This document shows positions 53,923-60,976 of a stretch of DNA of 64,000 nucleotides, piece by piece (positions within the stretch are counted from its first letter, which is position 1; every line of letters starts with the position of its first letter). Source of the stretch: Hyaloraphidium curvatum SAG 235-1 (taxonomy: Eukaryota; Fungi; Monoblepharomycota); NCBI GenBank assembly GCA_025558095.1, contig JAIVFI010000024.1, forward strand, positions 310,001 to 374,000, given 5' to 3'. A program made the translations under genes and the position numbers. The notes under the pieces are model-generated. The model worked only from the letters and a program-made list of their open reading frames with translations, did no database searches and was not told the DNA's origin.

Positions 53923-55608
<1,686 letters not shown>

Positions 55609-56007: not shown

Positions 56008-59000
56008 TCAGGGGCTGTGTGCCGGCTGACCGTGGTTCGGGTTCAACAGATCAAAGTCCGAAGCCTGCATGGACGCCAGGACATGGTTGTTCGGCTCCGA
56101 CGCGGAGAAGAGGTCCTGCTGGGACGGGCCGGCGCCTGACTGGCCGCCGCCCATGCCCGTTTCCAGCATGAGCAGGTCCGCGATCTGCTGGTTCCCGAGC
56201 TGCGAAAGATCCGTCAGGAACGCCTGGTTCTGGGCGTCCGAGGCCATCTGGATGAACTGGTGGTTCAGGTGCTCGGCCGTGTTTGGCGAGAGCTGCAGGT
56301 ACTGCGATCCGTCGTCGAGCTGCCCGCCGACATCGCCGTCCCCGACGCCGCTGCCGTTGGCGAAGTGCAGCCCGTTGGGCTGGAGCCCGAGGTCCATGGC
56401 CAGCTGCGCGTCGGCAGGCGAAGGCCGGTGCACCGGGATCGCGTGCTCGGCCGACGACTTCTGCTTCTTGTGCGCAGGTCCGGCCGACAGGCCCTGGCGC
56501 AGCTGGTTCTGCACCGCGGCCTCCTCCTGCTCGCGCCGGATCGCCCCGATCGCGGCCTCGAGCGCAGACGATTCCGGGGGCGTCGTGGCGCTCGAAACCG
56601 AGTTGGTGCGCACCATGCGCGGCTCCTGCTGCAAGTCCGTCGACTGGAGCCCGCCCAGGGTCAGGTACGCGGGCGACGCCGCCGTGCTCGGCGTGTCCAC
56701 TCCCAGGTTCAGCGGGCCGGGCGTCTGGAACGAGGTCGCGTTCAGGCCCGGTGCGAGTCCCATGCGCTCAAAGTGCCGGTAGAACTCCTGCTTCCGCTTG
56801 CCAAAGTAGAAGAGCGCGTACTGGAAGCCGTCGACCTCCTCGTGCTTGCGCCGGCGCTTCTTCTTGTTCTGCGCCGCCGCCGCCTGCGCCTTGGCGTCCG
56901 CGGCCGCCGCGGATCCGGCGGCGGGGGCGGGCTGGTACTCGTCGCAGCGCGTGAACCGGATGCTGGCGAGCATCACCCAAGGGTAGCGCCGGGAAAAGTC
57001 AACGACCCAGTCCTCGGTCAGGTCCATGCGCACGAGCGAGATGGCCTCCTTGACGTGACCAACGCTGTACTCCTCCTGCAGCTTCTGGTTCATGAGGCTC
57101 TGCCGCGCCGGGTCGTAGCCGTAGGACACGTTGAGGAACACGGTGCCCTCGGTGTTGGGCGCTTCCCAGCTGCTGTTGCTCGCGTCGAGAAACGAGCCGT
57201 TGGCGAGCCGGCCAAAGCAGATCTTTGGCTGGACCTGTCGCGCCGGAAAGGCTCAGCACTTACAAGCGGGAAGAAAGCGATTCGGATACCCACCAAGCTC
57301 TGCGGATGCCACACGGGGTCCAGCGAGATCTCGCCCAGGAAGGCCTCGACCTCCTTGATCAGCTCCTCGGGCGGCACCCACTCGACGAGCGGCTGCGTGA
57401 GGTCGGATCCCTGCATCTGGCTGTGTACCTGCACGACCAGGTTGTGCGTGATCTTGCCCGTCGGGTTGGGCGCCTCGAGCACCCGGCCCCACAGCTCCTG
57501 CCACCCAGCCTCGTCCTTGCGGCACGTGTACACGGTGCGGCACACCTTTTCGCTGTCGGGCCGGCGCGGGAACCGCTGCAGCGCCGCCAGCACGGGGACG
57601 CACTGCAGCAGCTGCTGCACCCGCGCCGAGTTGAGGCCCCAGCGGTTCTTGGCGTAGTCCGTGTGCGAGGCGTGGCCGCCGCCGCGGTACAGCTTGGACT
57701 TGATGATGGTCCCGAGGGCAAACACCGTCTCCTCAAAGACCTTGAAGTCCACCGCGGCGCTGCCGTCGGCGCTCGGCAGCTCCAGCGCGAGCTTGTGGAT
57801 CTTCTTCTCCTCGGACTGCAGGAGCGCAGCCAGGTCGGGGGTGGATGCGGCGGCGAGCACCGGCTGGGGGATGATGGCCGGCGGCACGGCCACGACCACG
57901 GCCTTGGTCGCGCCGGTGGGCAGCGGCAGCGAGGCGGCCGTCAGAGTCGGCTGCAGCACAGGTGCGGGGGTCGCGGACATGGCCGGTTGGGGCACAGAGC
58001 CGGCGGCGGAAAAAGTCCGGGTGAGGTTCGCGGGCGTCGATATCGACGCCGCTGCCGCGGCCGCGGCCTGGGCGACCTGCTGGTGCTGCTGGGCCGTCTG
58101 GATCGCGGCTGCAAGGAAAGGAACCCGTCAATCGGCCGATCGGGACGAAAATGGAAGCCAACTCACCCTGAGCAGCGGCCTCGTGCTGCTGCTGCACGTT
58201 CTGCAGCGCCTGGTGCGTAGCTGCGGCGTGCTGCGCGTTCTGCAGCGCCTGCTGCGCGACCACCAGCGCCGCCTCGGGCCCGTTGACGGCGGCGGTCGGT
58301 TGCACGATCGACGGGCTCGACACTTGCACCTGGGGCGACGGGTTGGCCGGCGCCAGCGTCACGTGGCCCGGCGGCGGCGCGCTGGACGCCGGGTGGCCGA
58401 CGTTCTGCACGATCATCTGCGGCGACGATCCGCTGCCGCCCTGCATCGCCGCCGATGCCGCCGCGGCCTGCTGTGCCTGTGCTTGTGCCTGTGCCTGTGC
58501 CTGTGCTTGCGCTTGCGCCTGGGCGTGGGCCTGTCAAGCACGGGGAGCGAGTTAGGAGAGCCACGAAAGCCCCCAGATCCGCGGCGTACCTGGTACTGGG
58601 CCTGCGCCTGCGCCTGCATCTGGGCCTGCTGCTGCGCGTGTGCCTGCGCCAGCGCCGCCATGGCGTTCTCCGCCGCCTGCTGCGGCGTCTCGCCCGGCTG
58701 CACTTTGACGGCGATGGTCTGGGTCGTGGGCATCCCCGGGCCAAAGAGCTGCATGTACTGCGCCTGCGCGGCCTGCTGCTGCTGCGCGGCGGCGACGGCG
58801 TGTGCCTGCTGGTTCAGCTGGTGTTGCAGCACGGCCTGCTGGTTCAGCTGGTGCTGCATGGCGACCTGCTGGGCGGCCAGCTGCATCGACGCCTCGCCGT
58901 CCGGGCCGCCTTGCGGGCCGCCCTGCGGGCCGGCGGGACCGCCGAGGTCCGAGGTGGGGAGGTTGGAGGCGGGGATGATCGAGGCGATGGCGGGGATGCC

Positions 59001-59459
59001 GATGGGGGTCTGCGGGGTCTGCAGCGAGCCGGGCGTGCCGACCGACATGGATCCGCCGGGCGTGCCGAGCGAGGGCGCGTAGCCCTGCTGGAACTGGGTC
59101 TGCAGCTGGGCCAGCTGCGGGTGCACGACGGGGTGCATGCCCTGCGGCTGCACCACGCCCGCGATCGCCGGATGGCCGGCCTGCAGCGGGATGGCCTGCA
59201 GCGGCGTGCCGACGGCGGGGCCGGCGGCCTGCGCCTGCTGGAGGCCGCCCGCCATTGCGCCGACGGGCTGCAGCACGGTGGTGAGCGTGCCGCCCGGGCC
59301 GGCCAGCAGCGTGGGGGCGTGCACGATGCCGTGCGGCAGCTGCACGATCGTCGGCTGCATGATGCCCGGCTGCGAGCCGACCGGCAGGGCGCCCGGGGCG
59401 TCCAGTGCCTGCACGATCTGCACTGCCTGCAGCTGGCCGGGGCCCAGCGGCGAGTCCAT
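56008..59459 (-). CDS. Gln/Ala-rich protein with ParB-type HTH and phage-Dam-like N6-adenine methyltransferase fold (degenerate NVSY motif); exons 59459-58590, 58530-58167, 58108-57294, 57234-56008
   Basis: ALGTIIKSKLYR...HTDYAKNRWG HTH-like block; EWVPPEELI...FLGEISLDP...W...GTVFLNVSY...KLQEEYSVGHVKEAISLV...IRF...ALFYFG...FYRHF follows the motif order of phage Dam-type methylases. Confidence 0.78.
58468..58530 (-). repeat. Hexamer microsatellite encoding a (Gln-Ala)n tract
   Basis: tgtgcc/tgtgct/tgcgct repeats on the + strand, read as AQAQAQ on the - strand. Confidence 0.8.
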
Positions 59460-60037
59460 GGCGGCCGCCCTGCGCGGGGTGCGCTCGCGGGCGGGCCGCC
59501 GTCCGCCGCGCTGCGCTATCTGCGGAGTTCCGGGCGCCGTCGCGGCGGGCGGGCCGCTGGCGGGAACGCCAGCTTGGGCGCCGCGGGGAGTTCTGGCGAC
59601 GGCGGCGCACGCGTCCGGGCCCGATTCTGCGCCGCGCGGGCTGCCGCCGGCCGTGCGGAACGCGATGCGGGGTCTCCGCCGGGGCAGGGGGGGCCGCCGG
59701 GGTCGGGGCACGCGGGGAGAGGTCGAGGGGTGTTCACGGCAGTTCACGCGCTTCGCGGCGCCCAGGCCGCCTGGCCGCACAACCACCGGCGCCCCGCCGA
59801 ATCCCTCTCCGGCCGGCCCCGGCGGCCGCTGAATGCGCACTTCGGCGCGATCGGCAATCCCACTCTCCGTTTGTCCGCCGGCGAGCGCGCAATGGTGGCC
59901 GGGGTGCGTGCCGCCGCCCGTGCCCCGAGCATCCCCAAGGACCGCCGCTGATTTAAGCGACACCAGTGCCTCTTTTGCTTCGGACGACTGTGCAGATTCG
60001 AGATCCATGATCACCCTTCGCACGGGCCCGGTTCCAG

Positions 60038-60976
60038 GTGGCTGCTCGCGGGATCCCGTTCCGTGTCCCCCGCTCACCTGCCCCGCACGGGCTCCCGCTA
60101 CTGGACTATATCCGGGCCACCGCCAGCGCCATCCCGGGCTTATATTCTCATTACATCACCCCGTCCATCCTCGCCACGGCCCGTCCCTCGGCCTCGCTCA
60201 TCGACAAGCACAAGCTCGTGGACGCCTTCCTCTCCAGCAACCTTCGCACCCTGATCAACCTGCAGGAACCCGCCGAGCACCCCTCGTGCGGACCCGACGG
60301 CGTGCTCCCCGATACCGGCTTCAGCTACGACCCGGTGACCTTCACCGACGCCGGCATCCGCTTCTTCAACTTTGGCTGGCCCGACATGACCGCGCCCCCC
60401 TTCGAGCTCATGGACACCATCGTCGAGGTCATCGCGGACTCGATCAAGGGCGGGCGCCGCTGCGCGGTGCACTGCCACGCCGGCCTTGGGAGGACCGGGC
60501 TCGCGGTGGCGTGCTTCCTCGTCACCCTGCGCGTGCGCGTGGACGACGCGGTGTGGTGGGTCCGCATGGCGAGGCCGGGATCGGTCCAGACGGCGAAGCA
60601 GGTCAGATTTCTCTACTCTTGGGCGGAGCGGTGGGAGGCGAGGGCAAAGGAGAGGAGGGAGAAGGAGGAGGAGAGGAGGAGGAGGATCGCGGAGGCGTCG
60701 GCGGACGGGCCCGAGGAGTCCACGGACGAGGAGGAAGCGGACCACGAGGTGCATCCGGTGCTGCGGAGGGAGATCAGCGGGCCGCTGCTGGAGAGGGTCA
60801 ACTCGCTGCACGAGCCCCTCGTGGTGCCCGCCTTTGACGCCTTGGACGACGGCGAGGACGGCGAGGACGCCGGCGGCAGCCCGGTACGGACGTTGCTGCC
60901 TCCTGCAGGCACGGATCGACCCGCGGAACCCGGCCAGCCAAGCACACCCCATCCGGACGAGGCTTCTCCAATGTAG
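60038..60976 (+). CDS. PTPDC1: PTPDC1-like protein tyrosine phosphatase (5' end not resolved)
   Basis: ITPSILATARPS, INLQEPAEHPSCG, GFSYDP, FNFGWPDM, catalytic VHCHAGLGRTG, RPGSVQT. Confidence 0.82.
   Translation: MAARGIPFRVPRSPAPHGLPLLDYIRATASAIPGLYSHYITPSILATARPSASLIDKHKLVDAFLSSNLRTLINLQEPAEHPSCGPDGVLPDTGFSYDPVTFTDAGIRFFNFGWPDMTAPPFELMDTIVEVIADSIKGGRRCAVHCHAGLGRTGLAVACFLVTLRVRVDDAVWWVRMARPGSVQTAKQVRFLYSWAERWEARAKERREKEEERRRRIAEASADGPEESTDEEEADHEVHPVLRREISGPLLERVNSLHEPLVVPAFDALDDGEDGEDAGGSPVRTLLPPAGTDRPAEPGQPSTPHPDEASPM

Follow-up and report, generated by a model that had tools for sequence, protein, structure and literature searches.

A predicted Dam-like methyltransferase fold with a degenerate catalytic motif in a glutamine-rich helix-turn-helix protein of Hyaloraphidium curvatum

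We analyzed a gene on the minus strand at positions 56008-59459 of a 64,000-nucleotide stretch of the Hyaloraphidium curvatum SAG 235-1 genome (contig JAIVFI010000024.1, positions 310,001 to 374,000; this whole stretch is called the window, and coordinates refer to it unless a contig is given). It is a genuine, expressed nuclear gene of H. curvatum, with four exons and three GT..AG introns. Its 1091-aa product combines a helix-turn-helix (HTH) domain with a domain that is predicted to adopt the fold of phage and bacterial Dam-type (PF05869-like) adenine methyltransferases, and the canonical (N/D)PPY catalytic motif (motif IV) is replaced by NVSY. Judged from the sequence, a role in DNA binding or gene regulation is more likely for this protein than DNA methylation.

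Expression, splicing, and predicted fold

A 2521-nt transcript contig from sequencing run X1 joins positions 56425-57232, 57292-58108, 58167-58529, and 58589-59098, removing all three introns; the exons proposed in an initial annotation made from the sequence alone are thus joined in cDNA. This run is the only public one that covers the gene stretch; its contigs bear adapters, and its label, "RNA?," was a guess. Since canonical introns are cleanly removed both in this gene and in its plus-strand neighbor, the run is transcript derived. Over the exon 1 region, its RNA contigs cover 58589-59098 and 59278-59730. Each of the four exon pieces is open, and together they yield the full-length product (290 + 121 + one split codon + 271 + 408 = 1091 aa), starting from the first in-frame ATG after 60008, at 59459. 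The ortholog P0001 is continuous across the junction of the intron at 57235-57293 (...WHPQSPVQPKICFG...). Contamination is excluded because the gene has spliceosomal introns, a host-like GC content (64-78% over the gene region), and a syntenic position: a proteasome ATPase gene lies downstream both here and at the ortholog on contig L018.

Sequence searches were made with single exons or database orthologs as queries. Searches of the exon pieces against Pfam and PHROGs found nothing relevant, with no PF05869 match at an E value of ≤10, and a Pfam scan of P0001 (68% identical) gave no PF05869 match at an E value of ≤1. PDB sequence searches and tblastn searches against GenBank phages with the exons likewise found nothing relevant. 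These direct exon searches came back empty because the exons, taken singly, have diverged too far or lack sufficient length. With the exon that carries the HTH as the query, an exhaustive HMMER search returned 126 relatives at an E value of ≤1e-3, among them prokaryotic proteins of ~300 aa that run from the same HTH into EWYTP...IDLDPAS...W.G.V(Y/W)(L/M)NPPYG. The prokaryotic relatives score 29-70 bits on PF05869, above its gathering cutoff of 28.1 bits; the window exons and P0001 score below this cutoff and so fall outside formal Pfam membership. PF05869 was present in 15 of 79 short HTH homologs, in keeping with the earlier suggestion that Dam-type domains are fused to the same HTH in prokaryotes.

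Homology of the second domain to Dam-type enzymes emerged from ortholog-based comparisons. Residues 40-365 of P0001 aligned collinearly over both domains with the 306-aa bacterial protein P0041 (BLASTP E value, 7e-16), and an hhalign comparison of the methylase parts only, eukaryotic against bacterial PF05869 proteins, gave a probability of 98.6% and an E value of 8.9e-16. In an AlphaFold model of P0001:40-365 (predicted local distance difference test [pLDDT] score, 84), residues 133-318 form a Rossmann-type domain. An exhaustive structural comparison with VIA matched this domain to PCIF1 (Z score, 10.1), DIMT1 (9.7), EcoDam, RlmJ, and ErmE (9.5 each), and T4 Dam (9.3), with DpnM (8.7) and M.TaqI (8.6) following; adenine-N6 methyltransferases were 8 of the 9 chains at a Z score of 9 or more. 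When the ESM-Atlas was searched by language-model features, PF05869 clusters accounted for 26 of the 30 top matches, mostly from phages, and the nearest Atlas structures were Dam proteins of phages, some of them carrying DUF3102 or ParB_N. A Foldseek search against the PDB gave no match at an E value of ≤0.001 for either the P0001 model or the HTH model. Taken together, the alignments and the model confirm a predicted phage- or bacterial-type Dam fold that reflects true homology rather than chance, as the initial annotation had proposed. The prokaryotic HTH-Dam family comprises at least 483 confirmed loci in viral contigs and extends over many bacterial phyla.

The HTH segment of the window protein, modeled by AlphaFold2 with 51 homologs, has six helices (pLDDT, 92.6). 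Its structural matches were KorB (8qa8; Z score, 7.2; 100 residues aligned), Caulobacter ParB (6s6h; 6.3), SopB (6.2), Spo0J (6.2), and VirB (4.6), and Noc (6y93) was matched by Foldseek with a probability of 0.95 and template modeling scores of 0.52/0.58, but with an E value of 0.39. Raf1 and AAA-lid domains score about as high as the ParB-family domains. A Pfam scan of the 51 HTH domain sequences at an E value of ≤0.1 matched no model, HTH_ParB (PF17762) included; one bacterial relative reaches an E value of 0.071 for HTH_ParB. The ParB-type assignment made initially therefore stands in part: the KorB, ParB, SopB, Spo0J, and Noc matches favor it, but the scores are only moderate. Given these models, a ParB-type HTH is plausible, in agreement with the literature.

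Motif IV and relation to described HTH-Dam proteins

Motif IV reads (N/D)PPY in 16/16 prokaryotic relatives and in 0/7 eukaryotic lineages (P = 4e-6, Fisher's exact test). Because the prokaryotic proteins were found via their HTH, this sample is unbiased for motif IV; all have NPPY, apart from a single DPPY. The eukaryotic sequences are NVSY in the window protein, P0001, and P0129; PLVC in P0004; PLID in P0005 and P0128 (Clydaea vesicula and Lobulomyces angularis); PLLG in P0006; and NPPS in P0014 (Borealophlyctis nickersoniae, partial). Two word-indexed homolog searches added a single ortholog, P0129, and the motif IV survey covers the fungal side of the family. A degenerate motif IV had been noted initially and proved to be general in these lineages. 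The accompanying description, loss of both prolines, fits the NVSY lineage but understates the change elsewhere, since distant fungal orthologs lose the Asn and the Tyr as well.

Other positions changed along with motif IV. All aligned full-length proteins from bacteria have the first Asp of IDLDP, and no eukaryotic member keeps it. The Trp after (L/F/I)DP, the GHV.EA motif, and the APGLN motif are conserved residues specific to eukaryotes. The block DASNSSWEAP.TEGTVFLNVSYG and NVSY are invariant across three close orthologs. Relative to P0001, the Dam-like part is 71% identical and the tail 33%. Between the two genes dN (nonsynonymous divergence) is 0.18, and dN/dS is unquantifiable because dS (synonymous divergence) is saturated. 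Maximum-likelihood analysis groups the four full-length HTH-Dam-like proteins of eukaryotes in a single clade (support, 100/100) with a very long stem, a topology compatible with a single old acquisition that would have been followed by accelerated change.

Passages of Iyer, Zhang, and Aravind (2016, BioEssays; PMC4738411) list a family with a ParB-type HTH and a "chlorophyte-type Dam" domain in chlorophytes and chytrids as presumed N6A methylases, and in its main text these passages state inactivity for METTL14, the clade 4 second domain, and DIRS1 only. The initial annotation had suggested that a repurposed protein of this kind would be an undescribed arm of fungal N6-methyladenine (6mA) biology; in that form the suggestion is not supported, as the family was already listed there. 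The two descriptions share an N-terminal HTH (of ParB type there, plausibly so here), a small Dam-type domain, chytrid taxa, and an inferred phage or bacterial origin, and we infer from architecture and taxa that the families are probably identical. We found the HTH-Dam architecture in Hyaloraphidium, Clydaea, Lobulomyces, and Borealophlyctis, which fits the family of Iyer et al. and agrees with the earlier expectation of relatives in chytrids. Unlike the published family description, the fungal members found here lack (N/D)PPY, and the module sits in a Gln-rich protein of ~1100 aa with a nuclear localization signal (NLS)-like insert and an acidic tail. The architecture is thus already known; new are the findings that fungal members have systematically lost the catalytic motif, that the module is embedded in a transcription-factor-like protein, that expression and splicing are confirmed, and that HTH-only proteins have radiated.

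Comparison with other known systems places the protein further. The prokaryotic and phage PF05869 HTH-Dam proteins (P0041 and IMG/VR loci L105-L108) share with it the collinear HTH and methylase, EW.(T/P)P, (I/L)DP, the Trp before strand 4, and the C-terminal Y.G....F..F..G, whereas they are ~300 aa long, with invariant N/DPPY and IDLDP and neither a basic insert nor low-complexity arms. Inactive methyltransferase-fold subunits (METTL14, ciliate MTA9, DNMT3L, and the DIRS1 and clade 4 second domains described in PMC4738411) also keep the fold with disrupted active-site motifs, and such domains serve in substrate binding or scaffolding. They belong, however, to MT-A70 or C5-methyltransferase families rather than to PF05869-type Dam, and the present host genome has no active paralog to pair with. 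The DNA-binding domains of ParB, KorB, Noc, and SopB are the best full-length structural matches to the HTH (~100 of 122 residues; Z scores, 6.2-7.2), but the window protein has neither the ParB N-terminal CTPase nor the dimerization domain, identity is 6-19%, and Pfam HTH_ParB is unmatched. According to a 2026 review of fungal methylation, no fungal 6mA reader is known (PMC13297926); in that review and in a eukaryote-wide 6mA survey, ParB goes unmentioned and the rare occurrences of "Dam" denote the bacterial enzyme.

Proposed regulatory, enzymatic, and accessory roles

We consider it reasonably probable that the protein is a DNA-bound regulator, in which the HTH would bind DNA, the degenerate Dam-like fold would serve as a binding module, and the arms would recruit transcription or chromatin machinery. 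On this view, a prokaryotic or phage protein with two domains, a ParB-type HTH and a small Dam N6-adenine methyltransferase of the PF05869 type, would have been acquired long ago. The fungal lineage would then have built this module into a long, disordered protein rich in Gln and added a basic NLS-like loop and an acidic tail at the C terminus, and the canonical (N/D)PPY motif would have disappeared. The basic insert may then act as an NLS and the HTH may bind DNA, as presumably in the stand-alone HTH paralogs of many chytrids and blastoclads. The nonenzymatic Dam-like module could bind DNA, an adenine in flipped or modified form, S-adenosylmethionine (SAM) or S-adenosylhomocysteine, or a partner protein, with the low-complexity N terminus and the acidic tail as the putative recruiting arms. 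We infer that the protein is nuclear, binds DNA, has lost catalysis, and acts in regulation; the active-site residues suggest that catalysis has likely been lost in the family as a whole and has probably been lost in the NVSY lineage.

Several observations weigh against this regulatory interpretation. The NLS and activation-domain assignments derive from motif and composition, the fold model is that of the ortholog P0001 rather than of the window's own full product, and the ParB assignment of the HTH draws on Z scores of ≤7.2, a range common among helical domains, with no Pfam match. At the active site, the catalytic Asn and the stacking Tyr survive in NVSY, and the Asp of LDP and the invariant Asp in LDAS are kept, so that SAM could still be bound. 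Active KsgA/Erm adenine methylases use (A/S/N)(L/I/V)P(Y/F) (PMC3814359), relative to which NVSY is without precedent only in its third position, where Pro has become Ser. Since NVSY keeps Asn and Tyr, and KsgA/Erm tolerate L/I/V at the second position, residual or altered activity may persist in the NVSY lineage.

One alternative, which we consider unlikely, is that the protein still methylates DNA at adenine N6 with its unusual motif IV and is targeted by its HTH. The motif IV Asn and Tyr are invariant in the three close orthologs, the LDP Asp is accompanied by other preserved fold-core residues, the KsgA/Erm motif works in active enzymes, and Iyer et al. place the family among presumed methylases in the passages cited above. 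However, the second Pro, present even in KsgA/Erm, is a Ser in NVSY, the first Asp of IDLDP is gone in all eukaryotes, and the eukaryotic clade sits on a very long stem branch. Moreover, motif IV reads PLVC, PLID, or PLLG in more distant fungal orthologs within this clade, without the catalytic Asn/Asp or the aromatic residue, and because of these orthologs methyl transfer cannot be the function conserved across the family.

A dead Dam-like domain could also be the noncatalytic partner or targeting subunit of an active methyltransferase, e.g., an MT-A70/AMT1-type 6mA writer, much as METTL14 serves METTL3 or MTA9/p1/p2 serve MTA1. The host genome has MT-A70 (PF05063) matches above the cutoff at five or more loci, which are candidate RNA and DNA adenine methylases of H. 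curvatum, and eukaryotic adenine-methylase complexes are known to include inactive methylase paralogs as well as accessory subunits that bind DNA, according to passages of PMC4738411, PMC9852454, and PMC12485025. Pairing of a Dam fold with an MT-A70 enzyme is, however, without precedent, and no active Dam-type partner was found. A profile search of the host genome detected no intact PF05869 gene, only weak multicopy matches (E values, 0.06-0.6), and the C-terminal exon and a bacterial Dam domain as queries detected no second Dam-like copy there. The NPPY-intact partner whose existence had been raised initially was accordingly not among the host contigs, and we view a partner role as doubtful.

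A decaying relic or misassembled pseudogene without function, which the lost catalytic motif and the silence of Pfam on both the window exons and the ortholog might suggest, is very improbable in view of the 1091-codon frame intact over four exons, the spliced transcript, the syntenic orthologs with a domain 71% identical despite saturated dS, and the eukaryote-specific conserved residues described above.

The most novel possibility, for which we see only a slim chance, is that the degenerate Dam-like pocket would still flip and recognize adenine in a methylation-sensitive manner, making the protein a reader of 6mA or of hemi- or unmethylated ApT. Such a reader would couple promoter 6mA, which is abundant in early-diverging fungi, to transcriptional activation via the Gln-rich and acidic arms. 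Early-diverging fungi carry heavy 6mA at active genes. If the protein were such a reader, it would rank as the first dedicated reader of 6mA in fungi, and one of phage-methylase descent; if it is an ordinary DNA-binding regulator, it would be one more mobile-element enzyme recruited as a eukaryotic regulator, which is of moderate interest. The gene presents a phage-type adenine-methylase fold that has stayed under constraint after loss of its catalytic motif, tied to an HTH and to activation-like arms, and makes the protein a candidate factor for sensing the adenine or 6mA state or for targeting a 6mA writer. Loss of motif IV would also correct the view, presumed in the literature, that ParB-HTH-Dam proteins of chytrids act as methylases. 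In addition, the searches reveal that the same HTH heads a broader set of proteins in chytrids and blastoclads, and there is no Pfam model for this domain.

Feature layout, paralogs, and neighboring loci

The sequence features named in the initial annotation were all located on the minus strand where it had placed them, NVSY exactly so (Table 1). Upstream of the HTH lies a low-complexity arm of ~515 aa rich in Gln, Ala, and Pro (also Gly); aligned with orthologs, this N-terminal arm has composition in common with them and no reliable domain. The Dam-like domain, ~200 aa long, contains the KKKRRRK insert and is separated from the tail by a linker. Basic inserts also occur at the KKKRRRK position in P0001, P0129, P0004, P0005, and P0006 and in none of the prokaryotic relatives (alignment columns 350-390); in the P0001 model, this region is a low-pLDDT loop (residues 277-284).

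Table 1. Positions of gene parts, protein features, HTH-only paralogs, and MT-A70 loci (window coordinates, or host contig and position where a contig is given)
Feature	Position	Strand	Details
Exon 1, coding part	58590..59459	-	290 aa, ATG at 59459; Gln/Ala/Pro/Gly-rich low complexity (Q 20%, A 17%, P 11%)
Intron	58531..58589	-	59 nt, GTACGC...CAG; inside (Ala-Gln)n-coding repeat; absent from RNA contig
Exon 2	58167..58530	-	121 codons (58168-58530) plus first base of split codon; Ala/Gln-rich
Intron	58109..58166	-	58 nt, GTGAGT...CAG; absent from RNA contig
Exon 3	57294..58108	-	271 aa (57294-58106); end of low-complexity region, HTH domain, start of Dam-like domain
Intron	57235..57293	-	59 nt, GTGGGT...CAG; splits Dam-like domain; absent from RNA contig
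Exon 4	56008..57234	-	408 aa (56011-57234) plus stop (56008-56010); remaining Dam-like domain, linker, acidic tail
HTH domain	57396..57761	-	122 aa, helical, ParB/KorB-like, six helices
HTH block peptide FEETVFALGTIIKSKLYR	57684-57737	-	
HTH block peptide NRWGLNSARVQQLLQC	57600-57647	-	
Dam-like domain, N-terminal part	57294..57383	-	From alignments to relatives and hhalign
EWVPPEEL	57360-57383	-	Equivalent of EWYTP
ISLDPVW	57309-57329	-	Equivalent of IDLDPAS, strand 1
Dam-like domain, C-terminal part	56740..57234	-	VQPKICFG ... FYRHFERMGLAPGLN; includes GHVKEAISLV
Motif IV position	57121..57132	-	NVSY instead of NPPY
KKKRRRK basic insert	56845..56865	-	NLS-like; loop between late strands of the fold
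FYRHF...APGLN (FYRHFERMGLAPGLN)	56740-56784	-	
Acidic, hydrophobic tail	56011..56400	-	Last 130 aa: 14 D/E, 0 K/R
Conserved tail island YLQLSPNTAEHL	56266-56301	-	
Conserved C-terminal tail end	56041-56061	-	MQASDFDLLN...SP; positions are those of SDFDLLN
HTH-only paralog (L002)	C3:1009421-1009789		KAI9032419.1 of H. curvatum, 100% identity over 602 aa; locus L002 spans C3:1009430-1009789
HTH-only paralog	C44:233839-234391		
HTH-only paralog	C1:598619-599063		
MT-A70 locus	C4:284369-284767		
MT-A70 locus	C5:790415-790846		
MT-A70 locus	C25:450422-450961		
MT-A70 locus	C2:823913-824516		
MT-A70 locus	C38:230939-231145		

The HTH occurs at four loci in the host genome, with the Dam-like part at the window locus only. 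In the HTH-only paralogs, it forms the head of long Pro/Ser-rich proteins without a Dam-like part. The HTH-only architecture was also found in Quaeritorhiza, Paraphysoderma, Rhizophlyctis, Polychytrium, and Borealophlyctis, and many chytrid and blastoclad proteins consist of this HTH head and a long disordered tail.

We take the weak PF05869 matches in the host genome as chance and not as Dam genes, since L006, the single match that was inspected, is antisense to a retrotransposon pol open reading frame (ORF) and lies inside it. L006 (G000:C2:655556-658708) and ~10 similar loci carry a multicopy 907-aa pol ORF with reverse-transcriptase and integrase motifs, a retrotransposon of the Ty3/gypsy type by our reading.

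Two observations concern gene models and transcript assembly. P0002 and P0003/P0127, predicted proteins of other fungi, end a few residues past ...WHP(Q/S)..., at the position of the intron at 57235-57293, which suggests that the intron position is shared and that these gene models are truncated in public annotations. In the repeat region at 58480-58640 on the minus strand, a second contig has an odd 31-nt skip from 58636 to 58668 with CG..TT ends and only 22 nt on its shorter side; this is probably an assembly artifact in the (Ala-Gln)n repeat.

Directly downstream of the gene, the 26S proteasome regulatory ATPase gene occupies 54656-55608 on the minus strand. The divergent neighbor on the other side, at 59805-60976 on the plus strand, has RNA-supported introns at 59903-59965 and 60034-60122, and its ORF at 60038-60976 contains a CX5R phosphatase signature (VHCHAGLGRTG).

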